IMG/VR virus record: IMGVR_UViG_3300028920_000022
Coordinates: 1 to 64,000 of that record
Length of the DNA: 64,000 nt
Reading direction: 5' to 3' (one strand)
Below are positions 1-62,287 of this stretch, piece after piece (position 1 is the stretch's first letter; every line of letters begins with the position of its first letter). The translations under genes and the position numbers were made by a program. A model generated the notes under the pieces. That model was not told the origin of the DNA, did no database searches, and worked only from the letters and a program-made list of their open reading frames with translations.

Positions 1-1349
1 TCTTCTAATAGAGGAACGATATCACTGAACGCAGTATGATTTAATCTTTCAATATCATGTGTGGCATTCTGCAAATCCGACACCCAACTATTTAAATCAT
101 GTTTTCCCCACCAGACGGAATTTCCCCGCATGTGCTGGAAGATATTATAAAACGAATTTGCTCCACGGATTACACTATCGTTTTTTATCAAATAATTCAA
201 CTGCTCTTCAGTGGCATCACCATATTCCTCTTTTATTTTTTTCACTTGTTTTTCTGCAATATCCTTAACAATGGCACGTATTTTGTTTTCTACCGAAATA
301 ATGTTTTTATAAATGAAGCTTTTTAATTCTCCATACTTTACATCTTGGTGTTCCATTGTAGAAGAGCTGTGTTGAGAATAAGCCGGGAGATGTCTTACCT
401 CTGTTTTCACCGTATCAGGCGCAACACTATCCAGTTGGAGTGCTGTTTGTTTTGCTTCATCAACTCCACCTTTGTCCACGAAAACGATAATTTTATCCAA
501 ATCCGATTCGTCAAATTTAAATGGTAGTGGAAGAACCCATTCTTGTTCGTAACGATATATTTCTGAAATAAATGGGGATTTGTAATTTTCTGATTGTAGA
601 CCTTTTTCAAACATTTCCAGATATTCTTTTTCCGGAAGATAACGTTGTTTTTTAGCTTTACGTCGTTGTATTACTTTAGGATCAAAAGCAAAAATGACAT
701 TACCAAACTTGGCAGCTACAGTCAATTCAGAAGTCAACGACAACACATCAAACGCGCTAGATTTGAAAAATTCTCTATTCACTAACACCGAATAGGCATC
801 TGCTGGATTTGTACCATGATACAGGTGTGATTTTGGTTGAGCAAATTCCCGACGAGGCATATTTAGGAACTGTCGATAATATTCCCTACTGTTTTCTCCG
901 AACTGGTTTAATTTGTTGTATTCTCTTTGTAATATTCCCTCAGCCCATCTATTACCTTGGCGCATAAAATATTTACGCAAATTATACAGTTCCTGAAGAA
1001 TATCTTTAATATCTTCCTGTGCCGTTTGCCAATTAATTTGGCGTGGTTTTGCTAATAACTCTTCTATCTTTCCAAAGATTGGATCATTATCTGCTATAAA
1101 TTTTAAACCACTTATAGTTTGTCTAAGATAATCAAATCTATCTTTTAATTCTGCTGCAAAGGCAAATAATGTTGCTACCTTTACTAGCGGCGCAAAACAT
1201 GCCTTTTTCTTACGCTTGCGCTTTTTCTTATTTTTAGTGGCACGTTCTGGAAGGTTGGTACCTTTGGGGGTATGGGCTTCCCATTTCTCAGCCATTTCAG
1301 GCTTGTTAGCATACATCCATCGGCGCTGTTGTTTAGATTTGAACGGCAT
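1..1349 (-). CDS. ADP-ribosyltransferase-like protein, possibly virion-packaged (3' partial, runs off window)
   Basis: Translated by hand from ATG at 1349 and open to the window edge (not in ORF track). N-term MPFKSKQQRRWMYANKPEMAEKW; ART-like motifs LYHGT, LSLTSE, YRYEQEW. Confidence 0.65.
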   Translation of the reverse strand, partial: MPFKSKQQRRWMYANKPEMAEKWEAHTPKGTNLPERATKNKKKRKRKKKACFAPLVKVATLFAFAAELKDRFDYLRQTISGLKFIADNDPIFGKIEELLAKPRQINWQTAQEDIKDILQELYNLRKYFMRQGNRWAEGILQREYNKLNQFGENSREYYRQFLNMPRREFAQPKSHLYHGTNPADAYSVLVNREFFKSSAFDVLSLTSELTVAAKFGNVIFAFDPKVIQRRKAKKQRYLPEKEYLEMFEKGLQSENYKSPFISEIYRYEQEWVLPLPFKFDESDLDKIIVFVDKGGVDEAKQTALQLDSVAPDTVKTEVRHLPAYSQHSSSTMEHQDVKYGELKSFIYKNIISVENKIRAIVKDIAEKQVKKIKEEYGDATEEQLNYLIKNDSVIRGANSFYNIFQHMRGNSVWWGKHDLNSWVSDLQNATHDIERLNHTAFSDIVPLLE

Positions 1350-2580: not shown

Positions 2581-3501
2581 TCACAGTGACAGCATAGCTG
2601 CGGCTTCTTCTACATTAATTCTGTTAGCAGCCAAATCTGACAATACATGTCTTAATGTACGAACTTGCCATCCGTCGTAAACAATCCCATCGTAATACAA
2701 AACCTGTTTCGAAAACTGAACCGGATTGATAGGCTGTTTTCTAAACGGGGTCTGTAACCCACACATTTGTCGGAAATTAACCGGCACGTCATCAATTACC
2801 GTGTCATGATTGCATCCGTCAATAAAAGGATCTTGCGTTAACCCATGTTTGTTTTCGTAAATGTCGCACAAATCTACAAATTTTTCCCCGTCAAATTTAA
2901 GTTCCGCAAACCTAACATTTGTGGCGCCCAAGTTTTTAGCAAAATTAATATATTTGGCTATTTCTTTTTCTGAGTCTATTGCGTTTTTGATTAGATTACA
3001 ATTCAACCTAATTCTTCCACCAATATTACGAATTTTCTGGATAGATTCTTTTAGTTCGATTTCTTTTAGATTAACCCCTACAATATTACGATTTTTATTC
3101 AAATCATAATGGTGGATAGATATATTTACACCAGCTATTTGATCAAGAAAATCAACCGTTCTTTTCAATAAAGATCCGTTAGTAGTAATCCAAACAGAGC
3201 GGTTTGCCTCATTTAACATTCGAATTAGGGGTTCTAAATCTTTATATAAGGTAGGTTCTCCGCCTAAAAGGATTATGTTTTGTTTTCCGGTATTAATTGC
3301 TGCTTGTCCAATTTCCCGCCAGGTAGCTTTATGATCTGGGTGCCATCCACGTTTTTCTACACACCAGCTACATTTACCATTGCATTCGGGTAATAGGTTA
3401 ACTTCCAACCAATCTTGGAAATTACCTCCGCAAAAATTGGATGGATGAGGATATGTTTTAGTAGACGCATCCACGTGGTTGTTCTTGCACATTGATGACA
3501 C
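2581..3501 (-). CDS. radical SAM protein
   Basis: CNGKCSWC (CxxxCxxC), GGEP, TTNG; start uncertain. Confidence 0.9.
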   Translation of the reverse strand: MSSMCKNNHVDASTKTYPHPSNFCGGNFQDWLEVNLLPECNGKCSWCVEKRGWHPDHKATWREIGQAAINTGKQNIILLGGEPTLYKDLEPLIRMLNEANRSVWITTNGSLLKRTVDFLDQIAGVNISIHHYDLNKNRNIVGVNLKEIELKESIQKIRNIGGRIRLNCNLIKNAIDSEKEIAKYINFAKNLGATNVRFAELKFDGEKFVDLCDIYENKHGLTQDPFIDGCNHDTVIDDVPVNFRQMCGLQTPFRKQPINPVQFSKQVLYYDGIVYDGWQVRTLRHVLSDLAANRINVEEAAAMLSL

Positions 3502-28875: not shown

Positions 28876-29339
28876 TCAATTATGTCCTTGATATCAAGCT
28901 CTTCTTTGGTTAGATAGGTGTGTTGTTGCCAATAATGAACAAATCTGACGGCATCCATTATATTAACAACATTATCGAGTACATTATCAAATGTTTGAAT
29001 AAGAGGAGCTTTGTCACCGAGATTAATCCATTCGTTCCACTGGTCTAGTACCCAAAAACTGGCTTTAGCCAACTTAATTCTTTTTCGGTCACGGGCACGA
29101 TACCAATCTTTTGATAATATTTCCTCTAAACACATGTCAATTTTTTCGCACGACATTTTGTTCCTATCAGTAGTAATAGGACTACGCCCATATCCTACGA
29201 TAATTGTCTGGCTTTGGTTATTATCGCCTATTATTTCTTTACTTTTCCACACACCACACTTATTACATCGAAACAGAATCTGTGTCACATTAGGTGCAAT
29301 GTCGTGCACAACAATTTGTCGAAATGCGTGTTTAGACAT
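28872..29339 (-). CDS. ZnF-IIE family protein with extra domain
   Basis: KHAF..CNKCG..SC, ends LDIKDIIE. Confidence 0.75.
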   Translation of the reverse strand: MSKHAFRQIVVHDIAPNVTQILFRCNKCGVWKSKEIIGDNNQSQTIIVGYGRSPITTDRNKMSCEKIDMCLEEILSKDWYRARDRKRIKLAKASFWVLDQWNEWINLGDKAPLIQTFDNVLDNVVNIMDAVRFVHYWQQHTYLTKEELDIKDIIE

Positions 29340-29826
29340 ACAAATTATTTTCCTTAATATATTTTAGAACAGCTGGAAGCAGGTAGTGTTTGTGATTTTC
29401 AAAATCTTTTCTAATCCGGGTTGATGATATGGAGCTACGTTTTACAGGAAAAAGAGTTACCTCTTTTATAAGATCGGGGTATTTGTGCCAATTAGGAAGA
29501 TCGTGTACTACATCTTCCCCAACCAGTAGATGAATATCATCCATGATGCCCTGTTGACGCAGATACATTACCACATCATAGGAATACACTTTTTGTTTTG
29601 TTTTCTCCGTTAATATTTTCTCTATATCAGAAACCTCTATATTATCGAACGCCAATTTACACATTGCCATTCGGTGTTCAAAAGAAACTAGGCTTTTGCC
29701 ATACGGGTGTTGGTATACAGGGAACACTATAGCACGAGAGAACCCTCTTGCCGCTTGAAAAAGAGCTTCCGTATGTCCTACATGAGGAGGGTTGAAACTA
29801 CCACCAAATATCAATAACTTATTCAC
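29332..29826 (-). CDS. nadD: nicotinate/nicotinamide mononucleotide adenylyltransferase
   Basis: FGGSFNPPHVGH, HRMAM, LVGED..L.NW, ISSTRIR. Confidence 0.92.
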   Translation of the reverse strand: MNKLLIFGGSFNPPHVGHTEALFQAARGFSRAIVFPVYQHPYGKSLVSFEHRMAMCKLAFDNIEVSDIEKILTEKTKQKVYSYDVVMYLRQQGIMDDIHLLVGEDVVHDLPNWHKYPDLIKEVTLFPVKRSSISSTRIRKDFENHKHYLLPAVLKYIKENNLYV

Positions 29827-47859: not shown

Positions 47860-48122
47860 TCGATTATCTCTCTTATTACTAATTCGTTGTATTTTATTGC
47901 GTATTCATCACAAGTTATTACTTCAGAACTCTTGCCAATAAATACCACACTTAATCCGCTCATCCATGATATTAGAAATTCACCGTATTCTTCGTATACT
48001 ACTAATCCACATTCCTTACATTTATAATAATTTTCCAATATCTCCGGATTACAGAAACCTAAAGCTTGTGTTTGTAATTCCTTTACCTCATCCTCCTCCA
48101 TCTTTTCGAAATTGTGCCTCAT
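47856..48122 (-). CDS. ZnF-IIE family protein
   Basis: RHNF..CKECG..TC..LVIREIIE. Confidence 0.82.
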   Translation of the reverse strand: MRHNFEKMEEDEVKELQTQALGFCNPEILENYYKCKECGLVVYEEYGEFLISWMSGLSVVFIGKSSEVITCDEYAIKYNELVIREIIE

Positions 48123-48319
48123 TCGATTATTCCCCGTATTATCCATTCGTTACAACTTATTAAAGATGGATCTTTTCCAAGATATTCAAGGCTGTTATTA
48201 AAATGGGACATTAACATTTTATCGTCCTCTAAATATAATACCATCCCACATTCTTCGCATTTGTAATGGTATTGTGATAATTCAGCGATTTTCTTCATCC
48301 TGTGCGTCCCTATCTTCAT
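48119..48319 (-). CDS. ZnF-IIE family protein
   Basis: MKIGTH..CEECG..SCNEWIIRGIIE. Confidence 0.82.
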   Translation of the reverse strand: MKIGTHRMKKIAELSQYHYKCEECGMVLYLEDDKMLMSHFNNSLEYLGKDPSLISCNEWIIRGIIE

Positions 48320-48348
48320 CGGAAAAACCTACATCCCGTTTTATATAT

Positions 48349-48573
48349 TTACACTATTATCTCACCTATGATAAAATCATCGCAACTTATCTTCAAAGGA
48401 TTTTGTGGGTATGAACCGTTGATACGCGAAACTACAAACTCTTCGCTAAGATAGTATAAAATTATCCCACATGTGCTGCATTTGTAATATGTCCAATTTG
48501 TTTTGGGACATTGTGGGTGGTATGGATCTTTTATTTCTATTAATTCGTGCGTCCCTACCTCGATTACTTGCAT
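48349..48573 (-). CDS. ZnF-IIE family protein (first gene of array)
   Basis: VGTH..CSTCG..SCDDFIIGEIIV. Confidence 0.8.
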   Translation of the reverse strand: MQVIEVGTHELIEIKDPYHPQCPKTNWTYYKCSTCGIILYYLSEEFVVSRINGSYPQNPLKISCDDFIIGEIIV

Positions 48574-48889
48574 ATTCAACCCCGTTCTCGAATTTTAAAA
48601 GCTTGAAACGTAGTTTCTTTTTTATTTTTTCTTATCGTAATCCAATATTTTAAAACATTTTTGGGCATCTAAGTGCTCGAAATTAAAGGACTTTTTCACT
48701 TGGCTATGAGAGCTTATCACAGTTTGTAGGAAAAAACAAGGGGTTTTGTGAAGGGGGATTATTATAAGTTTGTAGAGAGATTGGTTTTAAATAATTGTAC
48801 AGGGTTTTTGCTTCGGTTATTCCCCAAGGTTTCAGGTTTCCCCAGTTTCTACGGCTTCTTCAGCTCTGGTTTCTACGGTTTACTCCAGT

Positions 48890-49046
48890 TTCTTTTTCGG
48901 TTGCCGCCGTTTCGGTTGCCATATTTCGATTGCCCCCGTTTCGGTTTCTTATTCGTTTTCGGTTTCTTATTCGGTTTCGGTTGCCATATTTCGGTTTTCT
49001 TATTCGGTTTCGGTTGCTTATTCGGTTGCTACATATTCGTTTGCCA
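48890..49046. repeat. iteron-like short tandem repeats (TTCGGTT core)
   Basis: about 10 exact TTCGGTT copies plus 3 variants, as TTTCGGTTGCC / TTCGGTTTCTTA units. Confidence 0.8.
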
Positions 49047-49511
49047 TAACACAGGTGGAGGGGGCGCCCGCCAGGGCGCGGCTGTCAACCCTTTATTGCG
49101 ATTCCAATATCCCCACAAACTATCCCACTTTCCACCCAAACTCTATTACCTTTCCATTCACTCTTTAATTCTTTTCCCCACTTTCTATTCTTACTGTTTT
49201 CTTTTTCTTCTCTCATCGAATATTCTTAAACCTTCGTTATTATTAGTTAAAACAAAACACTTTCAAAACTTAAATGTTTTCCAATACTTATAACTTGTTA
49301 CAGAAAAAAACGAATGATTCTCGACAATTATCTGGCAACACCAAACAACTATTGACAACCTTAAACCCCTCATGCTTTATTATCCGCTTTCTTATTCCTG
49401 CCATAGCTAACCCCGTGGAATCATTGAGGAATGTAAAAGAAGGAATAAGGAAGTTGACATAGTAGGAGGGATTGGGGTAAGGTTTGAGTCAATCGAACGG
49501 AGGCAAAGACA

Positions 49512-49829
49512 ATGGTTGTCAGTTTTGCAACGAAGGGTGGAGGCTCACAGCGAGCGCGGCGCCGGAGGCGAGCGGAGCGGAAAACCAGGCGGTATCCTCA
49601 GATTGAGGCACGAATGGCGCGGAACAATCGTCCGAGCCGGAAGCCAGAGAAGCAGCGGGAAAAGCCGGTCAATCTGACAGGACCGTGGACGATTCGGGAG
49701 GCGCGGGTGGCATTGCGTCGGCATGCAGAGTCGGGGCTGAGTCAACGTGCGTTTGCGGAAGCGGAAGGGTTCCCGGTGGGAAGGTTGTCAACGTGGCGGA
49801 AGCGATTGGAGGTTGACAGAGCCAGCTAA
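49512..49829 (+). CDS. HTH protein, IS66 TnpA-like, basic N-terminus
   Basis: WT..EAR..L....SGLSQRAFA...G....RLSTWRKRL; GGAGG SD. Confidence 0.65.
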   Translation: MVVSFATKGGGSQRARRRRRAERKTRRYPQIEARMARNNRPSRKPEKQREKPVNLTGPWTIREARVALRRHAESGLSQRAFAEAEGFPVGRLSTWRKRLEVDRAS

Positions 49830-50306
49830 TTGTGCGAATATAGGCTTAGTCAGTCAGCGAGAAAAGAGTTACGACCATGTGGGATCTTTGGGTAGAATAT
49901 GGCGGGCTGGTATCATTCTTAGTCCTTGTCAACGGTTGGATTCTTTTCATTGCGCGGATGATTAGGCGCCTTGAAAAGGCAGACATTCAAGAGGGTAATT
50001 CCTCCACTTGTTACTGTCATAGTTTGCCTTTTTATGTTTTCTTCCGTTGACAGAGCCGGTTAATTCTGGCATAAAGGGAACATCCTTAAAACATAACTTT
50101 TCCGGGTTCAATCCCTGAACGCCCCAAACAGTTCGGCTGCTGGGGCTTTTGGGGTAGGAATAGTTTCTCTCTCTTGAAAGGATCATCAGGAGTCCACGGA
50201 AAGACAATCGGAATTGGACTTTCGATTGAGAGGTTCCCGCAGGCGCAACGCGGGGATTGATTAATTCCGCCTGATGGTTCTTTCAAGGCAGAGGAAGGCA
50301 ATTCCA

Positions 50307-50735
50307 ATGTATAGAATTCCGATCTATGAATGCCAGTTGGTTCAATGTGGTGAGCAAGTTCACAGCGTGGATCGGGTGGATTGTTTCGAGCAAGCGACCC
50401 GAATCATTCACGGGATGACCAAACATTCCCCTTGTGAACGGATCATTGTGGTCTATCTGAACGGTGCCAACGGGCTCATGGGAGCGGAGCAGGTTTCTCA
50501 GGGTGGGCTGCATGGGTGTGCCATTATGCCGCGGGATGTAGTCCGTGGCGCCCTGGTGGCAAACGCTAGTGCGATCGTTATCGGACACAATCATCCTTCT
50601 GGTGATCCGACTCCCAGCGTGGAGGATATTCGGATGACCGAAGAGTTGGCGAAAGTCTGCGATATGATTGGGGTTCCGCTGCTGGACCATGTGATTGTCA
50701 CCCGGGACGGCAAGTCGCGGTCAATATTGTCTTGA
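50307..50735 (+). CDS. RadC-like JAB-domain protein
   Basis: E..., PRDV, HNHPSGDPTPSVED, LLDHVIV. Confidence 0.9.
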   Translation: MYRIPIYECQLVQCGEQVHSVDRVDCFEQATRIIHGMTKHSPCERIIVVYLNGANGLMGAEQVSQGGLHGCAIMPRDVVRGALVANASAIVIGHNHPSGDPTPSVEDIRMTEELAKVCDMIGVPLLDHVIVTRDGKSRSILS

Positions 50736-50814
50736 CATAACTTTTTGGCTGTGGTATTCTCGCGTTGCTTTCGACGCATACAGCGGCGAAGCAACGCGAG
50801 AAAGGTTGATTAGA

Positions 50815-51060
50815 ATGTTTGCAATTCACCTATGCGCGTCCAACGATCTGAACGGCAATGCTCGGCGATGTTTCCTGGTTTTCGATCGGGAGGTTCCGGT
50901 TGCCTGCGTTGACGAGGGTTGTGCTGGCAGAGGCGCCCTGAAACGAGCGGGATTCGAGGATTGTCCGGTCCAAGCCAGTTTCCAGGTTCCGCCGGCAGAA
51001 TATCGCAGCTGTCTCAAGTTTTACCCCAACCGGAAGGTTGACATTCGTTCGATAGTGTGA
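50815..51060 (+). CDS. hypothetical protein
   Basis: start MFAIHL; NDLNGNARR..VDEG motif. Confidence 0.7.
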   Translation: MFAIHLCASNDLNGNARRCFLVFDREVPVACVDEGCAGRGALKRAGFEDCPVQASFQVPPAEYRSCLKFYPNRKVDIRSIV

Positions 51061-51078
51061 GAGAATCTGGAACATATC

Positions 51079-51363
51079 ATGCCACGCGAATATTACTTTG
51101 AGGGGTTGGAACCTAGCGGCACCCTTGCAGATCACTGTTATGGCAGGCGTATCTACATACACCGAAACGGGCTGATTCCAGAGACAGTGAAAAAGGTGCT
51201 AGACTTCGTCTCAGTGTGGGGAGGGTGGGACAAGAATATTGACGGTTGGTTGGGGTGGGAATTACCCATTAACCGGGCGGAAGCAGAAAACGCTTTCTTT
51301 CTGGCACGGAAAGTATTAGAACACGAAAGGTTCCGCCGGCTATCGAATCGACCTTGGAAGTAA
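51079..51363 (+). CDS. hypothetical protein
   Basis: follows a promoter. Confidence 0.65.
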   Translation: MPREYYFEGLEPSGTLADHCYGRRIYIHRNGLIPETVKKVLDFVSVWGGWDKNIDGWLGWELPINRAEAENAFFLARKVLEHERFRRLSNRPWK

Positions 51364-51400
51364 CATTGACATTCGCCTTTTGGTGTGAGATAATCTGACC

Positions 51401-51574
51401 ATGAAGCACTATCAATCTGGTATCGAGTGGAGAACCGGTGCAGTCAACCAATTACAGCACCGCGGTAACAAGTGGTTTCTGATCACTTGTCAAAACGGGA
51501 ACACGAACGAAACTCCCGTGTCCAAGAAGATAGCGAAGTCTCTCCTGGCGGGAGGCATGAGCTACGGGTCATGA
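51401..51574 (+). CDS. 57-aa hypothetical protein (leaderless)
   Basis: ATG 6 nt after GATAAT; MKHYQSGIEW..GMSYGS. Confidence 0.6.
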   Translation: MKHYQSGIEWRTGAVNQLQHRGNKWFLITCQNGNTNETPVSKKIAKSLLAGGMSYGS

Positions 51575-51638
51575 CAGACTTTCGGCACGGGTTTTTGGTG
51601 GGGGCAACGTTAGCATTCCTACTGATGGGGATCATGTT

Positions 51639-51824
51639 GTGAAAGACTTCGGGTTAGTGGAGCTGGAGGAGAGGTTTCCGGCGGCATATGGGGCGTTGTC
51701 GGAACCGTACCGAAACGATTCCTGTTTGGTGTTTTTCGTTGACATAAACGGGAATCTATGTGCGGAGCTGGACATAGGGGGAGAATATCTCTGGACGGGG
51801 GAAAAGTGGGTTACAATCGGGTAA
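51639..51824 (+). CDS. hypothetical protein
   Basis: ORF. Confidence 0.55.
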   Translation: MKDFGLVELEERFPAAYGALSEPYRNDSCLVFFVDINGNLCAELDIGGEYLWTGEKWVTIG

Positions 51825-51844
51825 AAGCCTGATAGGGTAAAGCT

Positions 51845-52240
51845 ATGAAAAAGATTATTGACGGAATGGCTCGCGCCATGTACGTATGCTGGTGGGCGGA
51901 CCGGGAGGAAGAGAGGGGACGCAGCCACGGAGGGGAGGAGTTAACCGAGGTTGCTCCTGCAACGAACCGGCACGCCAAGGATCGAGCGTGGCTATTGTGC
52001 GGGATGTTCGAGCAACTGAACGGATTGAGCATCATGTCCCTTTTCGTGCGAGCCATGATTGCTGATGGCATCCTGCCGAGTTGGGAGTATACGGACGACC
52101 AGTTTCGGGAGGCATACGAGCGATATTCGGGGGAATTCGGGCATTACTTGGCAATGAGGGCAACCGGCACGGGGTGTGCGTGGGAGGACGATCACGCCAA
52201 GTTTGAGATTGAGTACCCGAATTACGAATATTACGCTTGA
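51845..52240 (+). CDS. hypothetical protein
   Basis: FGHYLAM...G.G..W.D motif; stop lies in TTGACA. Confidence 0.7.
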   Translation: MKKIIDGMARAMYVCWWADREEERGRSHGGEELTEVAPATNRHAKDRAWLLCGMFEQLNGLSIMSLFVRAMIADGILPSWEYTDDQFREAYERYSGEFGHYLAMRATGTGCAWEDDHAKFEIEYPNYEYYA

Positions 52241-52524
52241 CACGTGTTTCTAAACGTGCGAACATGGGTTTCATCAAAAGGAGAGAATAAGACTTATCAA
52301 GAAAAACCGCCAGGGTAGCTCCTCCGACGTTCAAGGTTTAGCTAACTTTTGGGCGACTTAAACTGGCAATCTCAGGAAAGCACCTGGGGAGCCTAGATAA
52401 AAGGACCAGAGAATAATGGTTTAGGGTTTTCTGGTGGCGGTTTTACTTGGTTAAAAAAGGGTTTTACAATGTCAGACTGGGAAAAAGGTTGACAGTCCCT
52501 CTTAATTGAGGTAAAAAGGGAACA

Positions 52525-52782
52525 ATGAACAAGCGGCAGTGGACACACTACTTCAAGGTACAGGGGCACGGACGTTTTCCCTACGATATGCTTCGGTATG
52601 ATCGGTGTTATCCGGCATACGAAGATGAATCATACAAGCTGGACACCACGGATATGCCCATAGCCAAGTATCTGGAGGATCGGGTGGTAGAATTGGTGCA
52701 TGTGGGCTCGCCGGACTGGCGCCCCATGAAAGCCCGTTGGACTTCGTTCGGCTGGCATGTGGTAGAAACCAGAAAAGCTTGA
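52525..52782 (+). CDS. conserved phage hypothetical protein
   Basis: F.V.G.G.FP.DMLRYD.C.P..RW.SFGW. Confidence 0.75.
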   Translation: MNKRQWTHYFKVQGHGRFPYDMLRYDRCYPAYEDESYKLDTTDMPIAKYLEDRVVELVHVGSPDWRPMKARWTSFGWHVVETRKA

Positions 52783-52813
52783 CAATCGGTTCTAAAAGAG
52801 GTAAAAGGGAACA

Positions 52814-53002
52814 ATGAAGCACACGGACAGAAAGAGTCGAGCGGACACAATCCCGGTTATCTGTGACAAGTGCGGAGCGGAAGCCAGAGGATTCCCGGGG
52901 ATGAGTCACCGAAGGTGTTCCGGGCAGGGAGACCAGGGACCGCGGGAAAAGCGAGCTGAGCGGCTGGCGCCCAAGAATCGAGGAGTCTGGCGAGCCGGCT
53001 GA
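52814..53002 (+). CDS. small zinc-binding protein
   Basis: CDKCG..H..C; own promoter. Confidence 0.65.
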   Translation: MKHTDRKSRADTIPVICDKCGAEARGFPGMSHRRCSGQGDQGPREKRAERLAPKNRGVWRAG

Positions 53003-53268
53003 GAGGACTAATCAACCAAAAACCGCCAAAGAGCAGAAAGAGGTTGTTTATAGGATAGAATAAGAGTAAACTCGGGGCGTGAGGGATCAAACGGGATCAA
53101 ACGGGTCTCTCACGCCTCGAATAGGGCACAGCAGAATAGTTTAGGCAGCGCGGCAACATAACCCTCACCGCCCCTGATTCCTTCTGTGCCGTATTCGGGG
53201 AGCCGCCCGAGCCCTATCGCGCCAGGGGTAATACTGGCGCTTAGATTAAACCCAGAGTAATTCTGAGG

Positions 53269-53538
53269 ATGACTACCGACAAGCAAAACGTTCTTTTTCG
53301 GAATATTCAGAAAAGACTGAATACGCTCGATGAAGCAAAACAGGATGATGACACAATCATTGTCTCGTTTTATTCGGATCAAAACCATCAAAAACTGGTT
53401 CTGACCCTATGGATTCGCAACCATACCGCCACGGTAGCCACTTCGGTTGCGGCGCCGGTTCACGGCTGGAAACAGCATGCAGCGGCTTGGCAACGGGCGG
53501 AAGAATTGGTATACTACCACAACCTAACGGATGGTTGA
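53269..53538 (+). CDS. hypothetical protein
   Basis: ORF. Confidence 0.55.
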   Translation: MTTDKQNVLFRNIQKRLNTLDEAKQDDDTIIVSFYSDQNHQKLVLTLWIRNHTATVATSVAAPVHGWKQHAAAWQRAEELVYYHNLTDG

Positions 53539-53588
53539 TTCCGGTAAAAAAGGCTTGACAATTTTTTCAATTGATGTAGGATACTGTC

Positions 53589-53813
53589 ATGAAACTTCAA
53601 GAAGTCGTGGACGCATTCACTCGCGGGGAAGTTGGTTCTGGAAACAACGTAATGTCGACTGGGGATAGGGTATATTCCTATCAGATGTTGATTGCGCAGC
53701 GGATTGATGGGAAGGTTCGCGTGGTGAATCCGAAGTGCAGTCCAAGCCGGACGACCAGCAAACACATCAATGCGGTTCTGCGGGCGTGTCCGGGTGCAGG
53801 GGTGGGCATCTGA
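53589..53813 (+). CDS. conserved phage hypothetical protein
   Basis: VYSY..LIA..S.TTSKH; own promoter. Confidence 0.7.
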   Translation: MKLQEVVDAFTRGEVGSGNNVMSTGDRVYSYQMLIAQRIDGKVRVVNPKCSPSRTTSKHINAVLRACPGAGVGI

Positions 53814-53883
53814 AGGTAAACAATGGCAATCAAGTACACAACCACAGTTGACGTTCAGTCAGCATCGATGAAAGGGTAGCAAC

Positions 53884-54120
53884 ATGGCAAAAACGAGAAA
53901 GAAGATGCCGCAAGATGCGGTCTTGTTCAAGTCTGAGAGCGTGTGCGCCGGCGGGACGATCATTGGCCCAGTATGGGTTCGGCGGAAAGGCAAGATTAGC
54001 AACTACAAGGACAGCGACCTACTGATCAGCGGGACCAAGAAGTTCTACCCGGAGTGGTTCACGCTGGGTGAGGCTCGTCGCCTCGCCAAGGTTTTGGATC
54101 TTGAATTCGAGGATGCCTGA
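53884..54120 (+). CDS. hypothetical protein
   Basis: ORF with SD. Confidence 0.6.
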   Translation: MAKTRKKMPQDAVLFKSESVCAGGTIIGPVWVRRKGKISNYKDSDLLISGTKKFYPEWFTLGEARRLAKVLDLEFEDA

Positions 54121-54184
54121 CTGGCAAGGACCGGCGAAAACGGATAATAAAGAGGTCGCTTTTACTTCGGTAGAAAAGAAGACA

Positions 54185-54367
54185 ATGAATAACACCCTAG
54201 CCCACTGTCCTACGGTTGCCCTTATCAACCGAATAAGGAACGCACCTATGGGTATGACCATGCGTGAGGTTGCGGATCAGTTGGTTGACGCTGGCGAGGA
54301 TCCTGGTACGGTTTTTCTGGCATATACTGCCGCAAAGATACTTGACAAGGACCAGGCTAAAAGGTAG
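54185..54367 (+). CDS. hypothetical protein
   Basis: start MNNTL. Confidence 0.55.
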   Translation: MNNTLAHCPTVALINRIRNAPMGMTMREVADQLVDAGEDPGTVFLAYTAAKILDKDQAKR

Positions 54368-54377
54368 AATAACACTC

Positions 54378-54584
54378 ATGAATGACGCAGAACGCGAAAA
54401 CTGGATTCTTAACGATGAAGGTCTCTATCACTGGTGGAAGTCCTCACGTCTGAGCATGCGCAGGTTTATCCGCGAAAACAGGGAAACCCTCACTTCCGCT
54501 ATCGAGGCTGCCGGTTCCGGCGGTGCTCCCGACCCACACCTGACCGAAGCTCAACGCGCTTCTGTTTGGTGTATGTCCATGTAG
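54378..54584 (+). CDS. hypothetical protein (leaderless)
   Basis: MNDAERENWILNDEGLY; TTGACA-17-TAGAAT. Confidence 0.7.
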   Translation: MNDAERENWILNDEGLYHWWKSSRLSMRRFIRENRETLTSAIEAAGSGGAPDPHLTEAQRASVWCMSM

Positions 54585-54591
54585 GTGTATA

Positions 54592-54960
54592 ATGTCTGAA
54601 TATAAAGCAACCTGTATTATTACGGGAAAAACGTTCACGGATCAAGAAGCCGAGGAACACATTGCGGAAACTTCTTTGGGTCCTGTGTGGGCGGCTCTTT
54701 GGGATTCGGATATTCAGTTCGATGAATATGGTATGGCTCTTATTCCTCGAAAGTGGAAGGAACGGTTTCGAATTCTTGAGAATGCTTCGGAAGATGCTTT
54801 TGAGAAGGAATGTCCACACGACCAGTTGATTGAATGTTATTCTCAAGAGTGGGTGTCTGGGGACTGTCTTCGATTGGATCTTCAGTGTAGCCAATGTGGG
54901 AAAAAGGGAACAATGTCAGTTCTATTGGACCCTAAAAACATTCTTTGGGAAAAAGATTGA
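54592..54960 (+). CDS. zinc-binding hypothetical protein
   Basis: CPH..CSQCG. Confidence 0.65.
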   Translation: MSEYKATCIITGKTFTDQEAEEHIAETSLGPVWAALWDSDIQFDEYGMALIPRKWKERFRILENASEDAFEKECPHDQLIECYSQEWVSGDCLRLDLQCSQCGKKGTMSVLLDPKNILWEKD

Positions 54961-54991
54961 CATTACCTAAAACCTGGAGTATAATCTTTTC

Positions 54992-55300
54992 ATGAATCTT
55001 TTCGTAGAAGAGTCGCACGTCGATGCCACCCGAGGGGTCAATTACGGCTCATCCGGCGTTCAGGAAAGTTTTACCAATAATGTTGGGCGTCTTTTCCGCT
55101 CCTGTCAGAGTCACTTCGGGCGCTGCACTTCCAGCGTCTATATCGACACCCCACAAGGGTCCAAAAAGATCGGTTGGGTTTTCGAGAAACAGGAAAAGTA
55201 CACTGACACTGGAGAGCCCTACCTGAGCGAAACGTGGGTAACAGTACACAAGTGCGCACCTGAACGTATGGTCAGATACGATTATCAGTTTTTGGATTGA
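54992..55300 (+). CDS. hypothetical protein (leaderless)
   Basis: GRCTSSVYID..IGWVFEK..ETWV. Confidence 0.75.
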   Translation: MNLFVEESHVDATRGVNYGSSGVQESFTNNVGRLFRSCQSHFGRCTSSVYIDTPQGSKKIGWVFEKQEKYTDTGEPYLSETWVTVHKCAPERMVRYDYQFLD

Positions 55301-55348
55301 CACATGGGGATCTGATAAGATATAAGGGAGCTACAAGGAAACGAAAAC

Positions 55349-55684
55349 ATGAACGAACCAGAAACCATTAGTGTAAATAATGTGGAATATGTGCGCAAAG
55401 ATGCTCAGCCGCCTCCGAACGGCAAGCGTGCTGTGGTCGTGGTTGACCGGGGTTGGATTTTTGCCGGCGATGTAGCTGAAGAAAACGGCAGAATTCGGCT
55501 CAGTCGTGCAGTGTTGGTGTTCAATTGGAGTCAGATTGGGTTTGATGGCGTGCTGAGGAATCCTAGAAGTGAGAAGGTGAACATCCGGAAGTTGTCACAC
55601 GACGTGGACTTGCCGTGTGATGCTGAGGTTTTTCGTATTCCAGTAGCTGATAACTGGGGACTGTTTTCGTATTCCAGTAGCTGA
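55349..55684 (+). CDS. Sm-like (DUF6948-like) protein
   Basis: VVVVDRGWIFAG..L..A....W; typically linked to GYG repeats. Confidence 0.6.
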   Translation: MNEPETISVNNVEYVRKDAQPPPNGKRAVVVVDRGWIFAGDVAEENGRIRLSRAVLVFNWSQIGFDGVLRNPRSEKVNIRKLSHDVDLPCDAEVFRIPVADNWGLFSYSSS

Positions 55685-55697
55685 TAACTGGGGACTG
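55630..55697. repeat. perfect 34-bp tandem duplication
   Basis: TTTTCGTATTCCAGTAGCTGATAACTGGGGACTG x2. Confidence 0.9.
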
Positions 55698-55699
55698 TG

Positions 55700-55933
55700 A
55701 TGGATGTTAATCCGATAGGTGACGGCTACGGCAGCGGCTACGGCGACGGCTACGGCAGCGGCTACGGCGACGGCTACGGCGACGGCTACGGCGACGGCTA
55801 CGGCGACGGCAGCGGCTACGGCTACGGCAACGGCAACGGCGACGGCAGCGGCTACGGCAACGGCTACGGCGACGGCGACGGCAGCGGCTACGGCTACGGT
55901 ACAATTAGACGCCGCATTAGAAGAAAACCTTGA
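55700..55933 (+). CDS. glycine-rich (GYGDG/GSG) repeat protein
   Basis: GGC-NAC tandem repeats; stop lies in TTGACA. Confidence 0.75.
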   Translation: MDVNPIGDGYGSGYGDGYGSGYGDGYGDGYGDGYGDGSGYGYGNGNGDGSGYGNGYGDGDGSGYGYGTIRRRIRRKP

Positions 55934-55964
55934 CAGCCATCTATCCTTTCTGATACACTGTATT

Positions 55965-56135
55965 CATCAAGCGGTCAGGAACCGAGGAGAATACTCTGGA
56001 ATACTGGACGAAGCAGGGACGCTTCGGGGGGATCCGTTTTATCTAGGCAACCCCAAACGGATCCCTCCGCACTCATGGTCCAACAGAGCCTCACGTTGAT
56101 CCTTCAGCCTTGGGCTTTCTCCGGCTGAACTCCCG
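55965..56135 (+). ncRNA. candidate structured non-coding RNA
   Basis: own promoter; nested stems GAGG/CCTC, CTCTG/CAGAG, TGGAC/GTCCA, CGAAGC/GCTTCG, GGATCCGTTT/AAACGGATCC. Confidence 0.55.
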
Positions 56136-56279
56136 ATTTCGTAAACGGTATCTGTTTCGTGGCTTTCCTTTCCTTGATTATGTTAAGGGTTATATCATGG
56201 GTCGGGATGGTTGTCAACCGGTTTTTTGATGGCAAGAAACTATTGACATTATCAAAAAAGTAAGATATAACCCTAGACC

Positions 56280-56531
56280 ATGAAAACAGCGATTATTGAG
56301 GTTGCTTACCTGTATGAGGACGGCACGTTTCTTACCCAGGTAATTGAGGTAAAAGCGGACCCGAAGGACAACGAAGCGGTCGAGCGAGCAAAGGACGAGT
56401 ATGCCCGTAAAAACCGAAATAAGGAGTGTGTCTGGTGTGTCACGCTTACCAACCACTTTGCGCTAGCAGAGATTCTGGAGGGGTTGAACCCTCGGGATCT
56501 GGTTGGACATAGCCGTCACGGAAACTATTGA
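56280..56531 (+). CDS. hypothetical protein
   Basis: own promoter. Confidence 0.65.
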   Translation: MKTAIIEVAYLYEDGTFLTQVIEVKADPKDNEAVERAKDEYARKNRNKECVWCVTLTNHFALAEILEGLNPRDLVGHSRHGNY

Positions 56532-56801
56532 CTTTGCCTGAAAACTAAGATATAACTCTGACTGCAAAAGCGGAGATAACATCACATGCAGATTTCGTTT
56601 GCTACTCTACACGTTTTGGCGTCGTTTTCGGTAGATGCAAAACGAACGCGGACTCGGTGGTTGGATCTAGTGGATTTGTATCCTGGGCAAGAAGTATCTT
56701 GTTTCTTTACCAATCACGAATTCAATCTTTTGGTATTCCCGGTTTTCGCGGATAAAAGGAAATAGTTGACATTATCCTAAAAACCCAATATAATCCTTCT
56801 C

Positions 56802-57950
56802 ATGTCTCAATACACAATCATGGCACACCGGCTCGACGAGCTGGAGAAACGAATCCGGCGCCTCAATAAAAAAGGTGGGAATATCGTCCTAGATGCCGGC
56901 TGTGAACGGGTCGAAGAATGGACCGACCCGGAAACCAATACCAAACATTCCCGCGTCGTGGTTGATATTGAGCTGGACGGGCTTGCCCCTGTCATTGATG
57001 GCTGGACCTTCATTGCCGCCCTGGAATGGCTGGAAACCGCCAATGTGGTCACTTCTGCCCCGGATACCCAGGTGCCCGAAAAGTACCGCCTGGCTGAGCC
57101 TATCTGCGAACATTGCGGCTGGGACCGTAAACGAATCTATACCTTCGTGCTTCGCTCGGAAACCGGGGAATATAAGCAGGTTGGCAAAACCTGCCTCCAA
57201 GACTTCCTCCGCTCCTCTGATCCCGGCTGGGCGGTCAACGTATTCAACCTCATGGGCGATCTGTCCCGGTGGGCTGAGTTGGACCGAGAAGAGTGTCTTG
57301 GGGGCGGTGGACCCCGGGGCTACAGTGCTCTGCGATTGCTGGCGGTTACTAGCAAGGTAATTCGGGAATATGGGTGGAAGGCGCGCAGCAAGGTTGTAGG
57401 CAACGAAGCAGCTACCGCTGACATTGCCTTGGCTTTTTTGGAAGATAACCCCTTTTCCGAGCTGGACCCTAAAGATCTCGAAAAGGCTACTGCGGTCCTC
57501 GATTGGGCGCCCACTATTGAACCCAAGTCGGATTATGAGCATAATCTCAAAACGGTATTAGGTGACGGACCTGACGGGCTAGTGAGGTACAAGCATGCTG
57601 GAATTGCGTGCAGCGGGATTATTGCGTACAATCGGGTACACGAGCAACCGAAGAGCAAGATTGAGTCAACCTATTTTGGTGAGATTGGAAAGCGATATCG
57701 TGGGGTTGCGGCTACGGTAAGCCGGGTGAGGTACACAGAGGGGATGTACGGGACCACGACTGTGGTATCGATGGTAACGCCGGAGGGGCAGGAATTGGTG
57801 TGGTTTGCTTCTGGAGGGGTCAAGGGGGTAGATGAGGATGAGCTGGTGGGAAAGGCGATCAAGCTGGACGGAACGGTAAAGAAGCATGATGAATTTCGGG
57901 GAGTAAAGCAAACGAAGCTGAACCGGTGTAAGATAGTGGTTGACGGGTGA
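56802..57950 (+). CDS. conserved phage protein with zinc finger and C-terminal OB-fold-like domain
   Basis: CEHCG..R..QVGKTC; G.IGKR..LVWFAS..GTVKKH.EF.G.KQT.L.R. Confidence 0.75.
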   Translation: MSQYTIMAHRLDELEKRIRRLNKKGGNIVLDAGCERVEEWTDPETNTKHSRVVVDIELDGLAPVIDGWTFIAALEWLETANVVTSAPDTQVPEKYRLAEPICEHCGWDRKRIYTFVLRSETGEYKQVGKTCLQDFLRSSDPGWAVNVFNLMGDLSRWAELDREECLGGGGPRGYSALRLLAVTSKVIREYGWKARSKVVGNEAATADIALAFLEDNPFSELDPKDLEKATAVLDWAPTIEPKSDYEHNLKTVLGDGPDGLVRYKHAGIACSGIIAYNRVHEQPKSKIESTYFGEIGKRYRGVAATVSRVRYTEGMYGTTTVVSMVTPEGQELVWFASGGVKGVDEDELVGKAIKLDGTVKKHDEFRGVKQTKLNRCKIVVDG

Positions 57951-58362
57951 GGTAAAGGTTGATATAAAGGATCTGTATCGCACGGGAGTAAAACATGGCA
58001 AAGCTAGTTGTATATTGCGGTAATGACGAAATTATTGTCACCACCAAGAAAAACGAAGCCCGAATGTTGGCGGAATATTTCCATGCCAAAACCGGTCGAA
58101 AGGTGGAGGACTACGATCGGAATGTCAAAATGACAATCCGTATTGCTAGTGAGGTAGTCGTCTCTGGTGATTAGAGGTGAGACGCTACTCCAAAGATCCT
58201 CATTGGTGGGTTGAGGTAAAGTTTAGTATAGGACGTTAGTGGGATGTGTATATTCAGTAAATGTAATTGGCAAGAGATTGCGCGCACATACGCGCCGCCG
58301 CTTAAAGTTGCGTTTGAGATTAAGGGTCCTTCTTACGCGGATGCGGCTGATAAGGTAATAGC

Positions 58363-58578
58363 ATGAATTGGGAATGCAGACTTTACGGAAAGATCAACAT
58401 TCAATCCGGAGCAATCCGCCGAGTAGACCGCAAGTTTGACGGGTCAGGGGACGTATATGCTGCTGCGTTGAGAGAGCTGAGCAAGCGGAAGGACCAAGGG
58501 GAACCGTGGTATGGGGATGCTGTCACGGTGATCACGCCACTAGGGCAGAAGCTCATTGTGGAAGTACCTTACCCTTGA
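58363..58578 (+). CDS. hypothetical protein
   Basis: SD; stop lies in TTGACA. Confidence 0.6.
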   Translation: MNWECRLYGKINIQSGAIRRVDRKFDGSGDVYAAALRELSKRKDQGEPWYGDAVTVITPLGQKLIVEVPYP

Positions 58579-58869
58579 CAGGTAGAATCAAGGGAAAAGA
58601 AACATATTGACATTGTTCCCTAAATACTGTAAGATCTTATCTTCAAATCGAAAACCAAGTTAAGTACCCGCTCGGAATGGTTCCGGGGCGGAACGAAGGT
58701 TAACACATATGAATCTAAAGCGATCGAGGTATCCTCCGCTTTCTTAACTTTTCGCTTGATAAAACTGTTGAATTTAATATGTTGATTGACTAAGTCCCCG
58801 TCCTGTTTGATAGAAGATTTCGCCGTCCTCTTGAAACACAGGGCGGGGCAACTTTTAGCGAAGGAAACC

Positions 58870-59121
58870 ATGACAGACAAGAAAAAGGGAATTTGGATTA
58901 TTGAGCGCCGGGATGGGGTTGAATATCTGGCGTGCGAGGTAGAATTCGCGCAAGGAATTGTTTATGTTCGCAAGCCGGTAAGAGCGAACGGCACTCACTG
59001 GGAAAAACTTTGTACTTCGGCGCTATACTTTCCCATTGACATGCTTGCGTCGTGGGGATGGACCGACGACAAAAATTATATTAAACAATATAATATTGCC
59101 GGCGCTTTTGCAGAAGAATAG
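58870..59121 (+). CDS. hypothetical protein
   Basis: AAGGA SD, MTDKKK. Confidence 0.6.
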   Translation: MTDKKKGIWIIERRDGVEYLACEVEFAQGIVYVRKPVRANGTHWEKLCTSALYFPIDMLASWGWTDDKNYIKQYNIAGAFAEE

Positions 59122-59176
59122 GGCAATCTGAGGCGCAATCATTCGCAGCTGCCGTCTGGGATGAGGAAAACAACCG

Positions 59177-59362
59177 ATGTCTCTAAAAACCGTCATAAAA
59201 GAAGAAAAGGATCTAATAAGCCTCACTATTGAAGGGATGAGCAAGGATCAGTTTCTGACGTTGTTTTATGCTCTTGAGAACCACGAAACTATGGATGGTC
59301 AAGACTTGTACGCCCGTATACGTTCAGCCATGCCGCAGGAATTGAGGGTTAAAATCTGGTAA
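59177..59362 (+). CDS. hypothetical protein
   Basis: GAGGA SD. Confidence 0.6.
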   Translation: MSLKTVIKEEKDLISLTIEGMSKDQFLTLFYALENHETMDGQDLYARIRSAMPQELRVKIW

Positions 59363-59403
59363 AAGAGATTGACAACCTGTTTTAAGTTTGGTATAAGGGT
59401 GAC

Positions 59404-59679
59404 ATGACAAAGCAAGAAATTATCACGGAGTTGGCGGGTGGACGTTGGAGTCACGAAGACATTCAGGATTTTGCCAGTGCTCTGAAGGGTTGTCGAGCAG
59501 CGGCTGATGCTGTTGCTAAGTGGCAATTTAATGTCGGGGATAAGGTCAAGTTTACGGGACGTCGGGGCAACGTAGTGGTTGGCACGGTAGTCAAGCGAAT
59601 GACCAAGAACCTGCAAGTTCGGGAGGATGAAAAGTTTCGTACCTGGACCGTTCCGCCGAGCATGTTGGAAAAGGTTTGA
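59404..59679 (+). CDS. KOW/SH3-like barrel protein
   Basis: FNVGDKVKF..G.V.K..K..WTVPPSML. Confidence 0.7.
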   Translation: MTKQEIITELAGGRWSHEDIQDFASALKGCRAAADAVAKWQFNVGDKVKFTGRRGNVVVGTVVKRMTKNLQVREDEKFRTWTVPPSMLEKV

Positions 59680-59710
59680 CAATTTGGGTAAAGTCTAGTA
59701 TAAAGATTTT

Positions 59711-60001
59711 ATGATTCACTTTAACGAACCTGGCGATCTCACGGAGTGGGCATTAGGGATATACCAGCAATTACGCTGGCAGCCCTGGGAGCCATTCGAT
59801 TCCGGCTCTAGGTTTCGTTGTATTGAGATTCCGATGCCCGCGACACAGAAAGCGTGGGAGGATCTGGAAACTAAGGTATTGACAGAATTACACTCTGACT
59901 GTTTTCTTGCACCTTCGGGGGAAAGCAGAGAAAAGGCGTTAATTGTCGAGATGGAGAATATTGTGGGATTTAGGACAATTCCATATCCGGGGCAACCTTG
60001 A
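59711..60001 (+). CDS. hypothetical protein (leaderless)
   Basis: own promoter. Confidence 0.65.
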   Translation: MIHFNEPGDLTEWALGIYQQLRWQPWEPFDSGSRFRCIEIPMPATQKAWEDLETKVLTELHSDCFLAPSGESREKALIVEMENIVGFRTIPYPGQP

Positions 60002-60032
60002 CAAGCGGATTTAATTAGAAAAAGGTTGACAA

Positions 60033-60383: not shown

Positions 60384-60414
60384 CAGATTTTTTTAGTTAA
60401 GGTATAAGGGGACC

Positions 60415-60846: not shown

Positions 60847-60850
60847 GATC

Positions 60851-61219: not shown

Positions 61220-61250
61220 CAACGGCTTATAATTGGGGTATAAAGAGACC

Positions 61251-61556: not shown

Positions 61557-61558
61557 CT

Positions 61559-61888: not shown

Positions 61889-61902
61889 AGAGGAGAATAA
61901 AA

Positions 61903-62070: not shown

Positions 62071-62287
62071 GGCGATAACATAGAGAGACGCCTGGGAGAG
62101 ATTCCGTCGGGGAGATCATGTCTTCTCATTGAGGACACAAAAAGTGCGGCAGATTGCTTGACTTACCGTGGAGAGTTTGGTATTGCTAAGTTCAAGTTGT
62201 ATCAGGATCTAGCGATGCTGGAGGGTTTCCAGCACGCCAGGCGAACACCGGGGCTTAAAAACCTCCCCTTTCTTCATAAGTTAGTTG

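Follow-up and report, generated by a model that had tools for sequence, protein, structure and literature searches.

The window analysed here is a stretch of 64,000 nucleotides, the first 64 kb of the 458,729-bp virus record IMGVR_UViG_3300028920_000022 (rated complete; G000 in the coordinates below), which represents an uncultured 459-kb phage from marine sediment. Its first bases carry, on the minus strand, part of a gene for a putative ADP-ribosyltransferase (ART). The frame (1349..3) opens with an ATG at 1347–1349 and is free of stops to base 3, i.e., over 449 codons. The initial annotation had described it as an open frame of at least 449 codons reaching the window edge, and the gene is indeed real: the frame is taken up again, in register, at the opposite record end and continues for 180 codons, yielding a 629-aa product which equals the database protein P0003 letter for letter. 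Moreover, the intact gene is found in independent assemblies with the same flanks as here, namely the radical-SAM gene on one side and a 175-aa gene, a 156-aa gene, a methyltransferase, and a phosphoribosyltransferase on the other.

The final 136 bases (G000 458,594–458,729) are a repeat of window positions 1–137 that differs by a single base, in a C-run near position 123. The assembly is therefore circular or terminally redundant, and where the record begins and ends is arbitrary. Although listed as “linear”, the record is evidently closed, and its linearisation cuts through the ART gene.

The motifs that had been read from the DNA, i.e., a leader of the PE.A.KW type, a K/R run, VKVA, YHGT, SLTS, and EQE, are all present in the order given. 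The leader MPFKSKQQRRWMYANKPEMAEKWEAHTPKGTNLPE corresponds to residues 1–35, VKVA to 56–59, YHGT to 177–180, SLTS to 204–207, and EQE to 268–270; the coordinates of the motif codons were verified against the DNA. The gene is organised as follows.

1..1349, minus strand: ART gene, window part (codons 1–449 of a 629-codon gene)
G000 458,053–458,595 (= L003 18054..18596), minus strand: ART gene, codons 450–629 and stop, at the other end of the record
1242..1349, minus strand: leader module, residues 1–36, MPFKSxAQRRWMYANxPEMAKxWxxHTPKGxxLPE; PHROG 1375-like, found with a profile of 33 leaders
1200..1241, minus strand: K/R run, residues 37–50, 10 of 14 basic, net charge +10; matches the basic tail of free-standing miniproteins
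855..1199, minus strand: helical region, residues 51–165, opening with the invariant VKVAxLxAFAAELKDxFDYLR; also in leaderless members
465..854, minus strand: predicted ADP-ribosyltransferase-fold core, residues 166–295 (AlphaFold2 model, structure searches, Tpt1 profile match)
816..821, minus strand: Y177-H178 of LYHGT, strand beta1, invariant; aligns with LYHGT of Tpt1/KptA
729..740, minus strand: S204-L-T206-S207 (S-x-T-S), strand beta2 and its exit, S204 at least 90% conserved (alignment, model)
639..662, minus strand: basic stretch R230..K233-K234-x-R236-Y237, consensus LQRRGAKKMxY, Y237 invariant (family alignment)
540..548, minus strand: E268-Q-E270 (ExE), both Glu invariant; E268 ends a helix, E270 is the first residue of a strand
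3..464, minus strand: residues 296–449, first half of the helical C-terminal domain 296–629; conserved in about half of the family

Predicted fold and family of the core

Single-sequence searches with P0001 and P0003 against Pfam, PHROGs, NCBIfam, and PDB sequences left the core without a match, and no match was found by tblastn among 50,697 phage genomes. A word-index search recovered two full-length orthologues (55–57% identity) together with about 40 further proteins which resemble the query only in the first ~35–50 residues. Since the core was still unexplained, an exhaustive profile search was run without the leader (alignment A3); it returned only 26 proteins at E ≤1e-3 among 1.84 billion representative proteins. 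The resulting alignment of 28 sequences delimits a common core at approximately residues 165–295 of P0003, in which Y177, H178, F215, G216, Y237, E268, and E270 are invariant and S204, K234, and W271 are conserved in at least 90% of the members. As overall identity among the members is only 17–53%, the conservation of these motifs, judged from the alignment, exceeds what chance would produce. Outside the core, the preceding helical region and the C-terminal domain are common to many members, while the N-terminus varies: 15 of the 28 carry a Nudix domain, and the leader occurs only in three close orthologues. The Nudix domains are generic, with weak MutT/RppH/NudE-like matches (RNA pyrophosphohydrolase, Nudt16-like, NudE) and no subfamily assignment. 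An Atlas search with the C-terminal domain (300–629) gave no usable lead. The core profile finds the gene again at G000 450–875, and the family profile detects no second member in the same genome. Overall, these proteins appear to form a rare phage ART family without a curated model, being represented by neither a Pfam nor a PHROG entry.

Two observations concern individual relatives. The deposited call for the orthologue P0005 (L004 5,968–6,000) starts at Met12 (MYANDPEMA...); the upstream DNA encodes the full MPFRSKQQRKW leader in frame, and the deposited call is therefore truncated. The relatives P0060–P0064 (936–977 aa) open with M..MYHST..KN...I...GL...NPIFLS, which resembles an additional ART-like domain of the His type, placed before the family core; the alignment of the core with the “MYHST” region of P0061 by hhalign is not significant (E 0.0086, probability 4.7%).

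Structure prediction of the full protein with AlphaFold2 from three sequences was unusable for the core (predicted local distance difference test, pLDDT, below 50). With the 28-sequence domain alignment, the core was modelled at a pLDDT of 90.9 and a predicted template-modelling score of 0.82. In this model, the LYHGT segment with H178 forms strand one (model residues 19–23); the L-S-L-T segment with S204–T206 forms strand two (45–49) and is followed by a helix; finally, E268 ends a short helix and E270 opens the next strand (113–117). As modelled, this layout is that of ART active sites. Foldseek against the PDB places Tpt1/KptA first (probability 1.0, E 3.5e-3), followed by PARPs, cholix toxin, diphtheria toxin, and exotoxin A; every PDB match listed is an ART. 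An exhaustive VIA search over 48,161 chains gave ART-superfamily structures for all of the best 50 matches, with Z-scores of 7.3, 6.8, and 6.3 for Tpt1, 6.5 for CC0527, 6.5 for TreX, 6.1 for pertussis toxin, 6.0 for Scabin, and 5.8 for DarT; further down among these 50 are CARDS, LT, PltA, PARP16, Arr, and diphtheria toxin. In the BFVD and Atlas libraries, the matches were to models of phage PARP-like, DarT, Tpt1, DUF2971, and AbiGi proteins. At the sequence level, the NAD+-binding lobe of Tpt1 is matched by the family profile (E 3.5e-4), with the two LYHGT motifs aligned, and the orthologue P0005 matches Pfam DRAT at 23.6 bits (E 3.4e-5), just below the cut-off of 25. Given the uniform structure matches together with the Tpt1 and DRAT matches, residues ~165–295 very probably adopt an ART fold, as had been proposed for residues ~165–290 from the sequence alone.

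Three great clades of ARTs are recognised, H-H-h, H-Y-[EDQ], and R-S-E (PMC9503650). The ART-typical motif order claimed by the initial annotation holds in so far as the three motifs lie on the expected structural elements, but it is not the classical R-S-E set: S-T-S and (E/Q)-x-E are present as S204-L-T206-S207 and E268-Q-E270, whereas the Arg of beta1 is His in all 28 members. With respect to the H-Y-[EDQ] clade, His and Glu are present, while beta2 holds Ser instead of Tyr; the invariant Y237, which might be the equivalent residue, comes two strands later. As for the H-H-h clade, the column aligned with the second His of Tpt1 is variable and the third position is occupied by ExE; in addition, the 115 residues before the core are predicted to be entirely helical, with no counterpart of the Tpt1 N-terminal lobe and no PF01885 match. 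Since a defining feature of each clade appears to be missing, the proteins are best described, as far as the alignment goes, as a separate H-S-ExE family that probably belongs to none of the three. Its members are likely to be catalytically active, because H178, S204, E268, and E270 are strictly conserved.

The N-terminal module and its possible role in delivery

About 45 proteins of 250–1,100 aa begin with a counterpart of residues 1–36 and the K/R run, and their remaining parts include DUF5661, zinc peptidases, the LigD 3′-phosphoesterase, MuF, GH24 lysozyme, rubrerythrin/EncFtn, DnaJ, and a SAM lyase that is accompanied by DUF3293. When IMG/VR was scanned for the pattern, the leader motif was found in at least 386 viral contigs. 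The 80 loci that were fetched encode mostly complete proteins of 41–60 aa which end in the K/R tail, and 45 of the 57 leader open reading frames (ORFs) that were read do not exceed 64 aa. Because these free-standing forms predominate, the “leader” is a common phage miniprotein which is here fused in frame to the ART body. Thus the basic N-terminal leader of the initial annotation is a distinct and portable module, which elsewhere exists mostly as a protein of its own. PHROG family phrog_1375 matches residues 3–48 (E 0.0011) and, more strongly, another leader protein (E 8.8e-6). A profile built from 33 leaders finds window positions 1233–1349 again (E 5e-25); neither this profile nor a regular expression detects a second copy in the genome, so that the fused copy is the only one.

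Other identities considered for the module did not hold. The idea that it is DUF3008 was rejected, as this family has no match in the genome and ten leader segments have no Pfam match even at E ≤10. Leader-like matches in Barnyard gp9, S-CBS2, FlowerPower gp48, and C75C1 (E 2e-3 to 0.4) are too weak to count. A literature search on the leader motif and on DUF5661/DUF6321 found nothing relevant, and the paper on polyvalent proteins (PMC5512222) holds no description of the leader.

The surroundings of the module were examined by scanning two genes on each side at 31 non-redundant loci. The families matched more than once include the terminase large subunit (6 members), the portal (2), minor head protein/DNA pilot (3), a virion structural protein, and several tail, tail-fibre, and tail-spike PHROGs; no replication family is among the 25 most frequent. 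In phage contigs of 150–200 kb, a leader-bearing protein is encoded just upstream of collagen-like tail-fibre genes. Judged from these annotations, the module belongs to the late, virion-building part of other phage genomes. A second N-terminal module, MNTEQAYINGFxKRAxxxGxSxxEA, was noticed in adjacent genes of two unrelated phage contigs of this size class (L008 6,103–9,535 and L010 3,991–9,384), and it directly follows the MPFKS leader in P0012, P0020, and P0038; this suggests exchangeable N-terminal modules beside tail-fibre genes.

The carrier-module concept is known from phage polyvalent effectors fused to MuF (PMC5512222, PMC9503650). Given that the leader lies elsewhere among terminase, portal, head, and tail genes, a comparable carrier role for its fusions seems plausible by analogy. 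P0003 itself contains no MuF (PF04233) or portal domain, while MuF is present in P0031, another leader-bearing protein. According to this scheme, residues 1–50 would derive from a copy of a small and basic phage protein, whose gene in other genomes stands among packaging and virion genes, and the fusion would carry the ART to the site of the miniprotein, most plausibly the DNA-filled capsid, from which it could pass into the next host with the DNA. Delivery of the ART through the virion is possible on these grounds, although we place it somewhat short of an even chance. Bolder, and in our estimate unlikely, is the general proposal that the 40–50-residue MPFKS...polyK unit is a portable module for virion incorporation or DNA co-packaging. 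Its usual form would be a very small protein inside the head, with its gene next to those of terminase and portal, and phages would have reused it like MuF as a carrier that loads enzymes into the capsid; its cargo would include the ART, lysozymes, peptidases, the 3′-phosphoesterase, and the SAM lyase, with the co-translated macro domain described below restraining the ART in the producing cell. As the fused copy is the only one in this genome, every function of the miniprotein would then bring an H-S-ExE ART into the next host.

Alternatively, the protein could be an active ART which is not packaged at all, i.e., an early or middle enzyme of the host cytoplasm whose N-terminal module would be a tether to nucleic acid, for example phage or host DNA, or to a partner, instead of a virion signal. 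The chances of this explanation are about equal either way. It is in keeping with the position of the gene among small, non-structural-looking genes in a long co-directional minus-strand block, with the extreme basicity of the module, and with the fact that part of the module's other cargo (SAM lyase, DnaJ, rubrerythrin) is atypical for virions; furthermore, T4 ModA and ModB are unpackaged ARTs (PMC5512222). However, it must face the observations that the free-standing module adjoins terminase, portal, minor-head, and tail genes in other phages and that the module is also fused to MuF and lysozyme, which are typical virion-associated domains.

Macro-domain neighbour, NAD+ genes, and possible targets

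Immediately downstream of the ART gene lies a gene for a 165-aa protein; the end of the ART gene with its stop codon and the start of this gene with its ATG overlap by 11 nt (common sequence ATGCCGGTTGA). The protein aligns with positions 4–116 of the 118 positions of Pfam Macro at 19.6 bits (cut-off 22, E 9e-4). Its best NCBIfam match is the macro region of DarG (E 5e-7, positions 2–138 of 338), and it matches several solved macro chains in the PDB; it also resembles ADP-ribose-1''-phosphate phosphatase. A putative macro hydrolase gene thus stands beside the ART gene, as in DarTG-type systems. In the orthologous contig L004, the order is ART, a 61-aa ORF, the macro gene (64% identical), a 156-aa gene, and a phosphoribosyltransferase; the macro neighbourhood is therefore kept in one of the two orthologue contigs, and the other is too short to reach the place where a macro gene would be expected. 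Modelled as a complex, the ART core and the macro protein scored 0.00, which was taken as evidence for neither view.

Further genes of NAD+ and ADP-ribose metabolism are located as follows.

29332..29826, minus strand: NadD-like nicotinate/nicotinamide-nucleotide adenylyltransferase (TIGR00482, E 1e-27)
G000 401,332–402,000: NAPRTase/NadV-family gene (E 2.6e-61)
G000 109.7, 125.1, and 274.4 kb: three separate Nudix genes

The identity of the ORF at 29.3 kb, which had been read as NadD, is borne out by the first of these matches, and the NAPRTase/NadV-like gene accompanies it in the genome. By their family assignments, the NadD-like, NAPRTase/NadV-like, and Nudix genes constitute a phage set for NAD+ salvage and turnover.

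Other neighbours of the ART gene were recorded. A radical SAM enzyme (306 aa, CxxxCxxC) is encoded at window positions 2,581–3,501 on the minus strand, about 1.2 kb upstream, and is kept in the independent assembly. Downstream of the ART–macro pair, also on the minus strand, are a phosphoribosyltransferase (170 aa, L003 14,497–15,009), which recurs in L004, and a SAM-dependent methyltransferase with an N-terminal P-loop-like segment (365 aa, L003 15,263–16,360); this stretch of L003 corresponds to G000 ~454.5–456.4 kb.

The wider surroundings are unusual in two respects. About 80 small ORFs of the genome, mostly 70–110 aa, end in a near-identical tail, [S/T]-C-[D/N/E]-[D/E]-[W/F]-I-I-[R/K]-[E/D]-I-I-[E/K]-stop, and many have a CxxC upstream of it. 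Some 60 of these are arranged head to tail on the minus strand at window positions 1,600–48,150, with the ART gene at the downstream edge of the array; others lie at G000 385.8–388.1 kb or are scattered. Related endings are seen in the 156-aa gene after the macro gene (LIKDIIE) and in the gene after the orthologue P0004 (MIREVIT). Going by this common tail, the ORFs represent a very large paralogous expansion. In the remainder of the window (~48,000–64,000), G+C rises from ~0.36 to ~0.50, and both the GC skew and the coding strand flip at 48–50 kb. This part contains only short plus-strand ORFs, one of them of 382 aa, no tRNAs, and tandem repeats such as the 12-nt unit ACGGCTACGGCA present 15 times at 55,722–55,899.

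Taken together, these data could describe a catalytically competent enzyme of a new and rare phage family within the ART superfamily, which modifies its host, is checked by the macro protein, and is possibly injected; as a whole, we consider this reading as probable as its negation. Mechanistically, NAD+ would be held by the core through H178 on beta1 and S204, T206, and S207 on beta2. E270, at the start of the catalytic strand, helped by E268 of the ExE, would then transfer ADP-ribose to a host macromolecule, the choice of which would fall to the flanking helical regions (51–165 and 296–629). Finally, the macro protein would remove ADP-ribose in the producing cell, so that the modification is kept in bounds or undone, or by-products are disposed of. 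It is rather likely that the enzyme acts on a macromolecule and not only on NAD+. A protein target comes close to an even chance; the ExE, the aromatic residues preceding it, and the size of the flanking domains point to it. Nucleic acid, which the initial annotation did not consider as a target, is possible with a clearly smaller chance. In its favour, or in favour of a linkage that a macro domain can cleave, are the resemblance of the core to Tpt1 and DarT, the basic stretch conserved in the family, the Nudix fusions, and the DarG-like macro gene. Of the two, a host protein is slightly more likely.

Several points weigh against this reading. The H-S-ExE combination matches no characterised clade, so that catalytic competence is extrapolated; the Z-scores are moderate (≤7.3), and sequence comparison detects no more than the first half of the fold. 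An ExE motif usually signals an Arg-specific protein ART. Macro domains are not known to reverse arginine ADP-ribosylation, and if the macro gene encodes the cognate eraser, an Arg-specific protein ART becomes unlikely. As regards injection, the gene lies here outside a structural module, at the edge of the ~60 small paralogous genes and next to the radical SAM, methyltransferase, and phosphoribosyltransferase genes. The counts of genes neighbouring the leader were made without matched control loci, and annotation is better for structural than for early genes. A prohead protease was not found with Pfam S77/S78; since the S77 control also matched nowhere, no argument is drawn from processing sites. 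Finally, the sequencing runs containing this sequence (marine sediment, with small shares of wetland and marsh) are all from DNA, with no RNA run among them.

A second explanation is that the enzyme is directed at nucleic acid and modifies either DNA bases, as DarT, Scabin, and pierisin do, or phosphorylated RNA or DNA ends, as Tpt1/KptA can. The DarG-like macro protein would then be the matching eraser, and the Nudix domains of the relatives would process the nucleic-acid or ADP-ribose moiety, either preparing or trimming it. Tpt1/KptA is the nearest relative both by sequence and by structure, with DarT close behind, and the macro domain to which the neighbour is most similar in NCBIfam is that of a DNA ADP-ribosyl glycohydrolase, DarG; in addition, a conserved basic stretch (QRRxAKKxRY) lies beside the core, and the basic N-terminal module could bind nucleic acid. 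The weak matches of the Nudix domains to RNA pyrophosphohydrolase, Nudt16-like, and NudE proteins point the same way, although such matches are generic. Yet the catalytic N-terminal lobe of Tpt1 has no counterpart, the region before the core being all helical; Tpt1 lacks an ExE; Pfam DarT (DUF4433) has no match in P0001/P0003; and the macro protein, of only 165 aa, does not contain the C-terminal DarT-binding domain of DarG. In the structural ranking, nucleic-acid and protein ARTs are not told apart by Z (TreX 6.5, pertussis toxin 6.1). On balance, this explanation is tentative and rather unlikely.

Still less probable is an ART-fold NAD+ glycohydrolase, or an enzyme which makes or consumes a soluble ADP-ribose derivative, manipulating the NAD+-based immunity of the host, with the macro and Nudix partners processing its small-molecule products. 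ART-fold NADases and small-molecule enzymes of the H-H-h clade are common in phage–host conflict (PMC9503650). CC0527/DUF952 is among the best structural matches, and the resemblance of the macro protein to ADP-ribose-1''-phosphate phosphatase and the NAD+ salvage genes of the genome would suit such an activity. However, about 450 conserved non-catalytic residues flank the core, suggesting recognition of a large target, and a phage which rebuilds NAD+ would counteract its own NADase. Moreover, ExE with preceding aromatic residues is typical of transferases. That the domain is catalytically dead and serves only for binding or structure, as the His-for-Arg and Ser-for-Tyr combination found in no proven active clade might suggest, is very improbable in view of the retention of H178, S204, E268, and E270 in relatives down to 17% identity, as under catalytic constraint.

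Phage ARTs with macro, Nudix, and NAD+-salvage partners are of a known kind. What appears to be new is the ART family, its combination of motifs, and its fusion to the miniprotein, none of which is described in the libraries or literature searched. The family is tiny and uncurated (26 relatives in 1.84 billion representatives), and its His-Ser-ExE set mixes features of the H-type and R-S-E enzymes; as the nearest structural relatives act on nucleic acids, defining the target would widen the known chemistry of viral ARTs. The macro gene, the Nudix fusions, and the salvage genes point to a self-contained set of NAD+/ADP-ribose tools in the 459-kb sediment phage, in which the NadD-like gene may serve the ART or counter depletion of NAD+ by the host. 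The leader, in turn, is a widespread and unstudied phage miniprotein, occasionally fused to diverse enzymes; if it is true that it marks virion proteins, it would be a simple tag by which metagenomes could be searched for injected phage effectors.

Comparison with known systems

Tpt1/KptA is the best match of the core by profile (LYHGT and the conserved Ser of beta2) as well as by structure. The differences are substantial: the N-terminal substrate and catalytic lobe, the second His, and a hydrophobic third position are found only in Tpt1, and the protein described here is three times longer. The N-terminal lobe of Tpt1 carries the catalytic Arg-His-Arg-Arg tetrad. A Tpt1-like 2′-phosphotransferase role is rated unlikely because this substrate lobe is absent, the preceding region being helical, and because an ExE is present.

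T4 Alt is a virion-packaged ART which is injected to modify host proteins. Like Alt, ModA, and ModB, the enzyme is a predicted phage ART-fold protein with an ExE-type acidic motif; its size is similar to that of Alt (629 vs 682 aa), and both are candidates for early modification of the host. Kinship with T4 Alt, the parallel drawn in the initial annotation, was nevertheless rejected: BLASTP gives E = 2 and hhalign a probability of 0.2%, and tblastn for a homologue finds no match in a phage collection that includes T4. In addition, the Arg of the R-S-E set is here a His, the N-terminal module is another one, and packaging would be conjectural for this protein.

The R-S-E toxins and DraT (cholera toxin/LT, pertussis toxin, Scabin, C3/iota; Pfam DRAT) have the same order Y-[R/H]-G...S-x-T-S...E-x-E, with the acidic pair at the start of the catalytic strand; the orthologue comes near the DRAT threshold, and the structures give Z-scores of 5.4–6.1. 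They differ in the beta1 Arg, which is an invariant His here, and no Pfam model of the clade reaches its threshold. DarT-DarG is likewise a pairing of an ART with a macro domain; here the macro gene comes directly after the ART gene and finds its best curated match in the macro domain of DarG. DarT structures are also among the top matches of the core (Z 5.8–4.9). In contrast, gene order and fusion state are different, the DarG C-terminal domain and the DarT sequence signature are lacking, and the setting is a lytic-looking megaphage instead of a toxin–antitoxin locus.

Finally, the N-terminal module differs from the MuF-polyvalent proteins and from T4 capsid targeting in that it is not MuF, has no Pfam family, and is usually a protein of 41–60 aa in its own right. 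With these systems it has in common that a small N-terminal module is joined to unrelated enzymes (ART, lysozyme, peptidases, phosphoesterase, SAM lyase) and that head and tail genes surround it in other phages.

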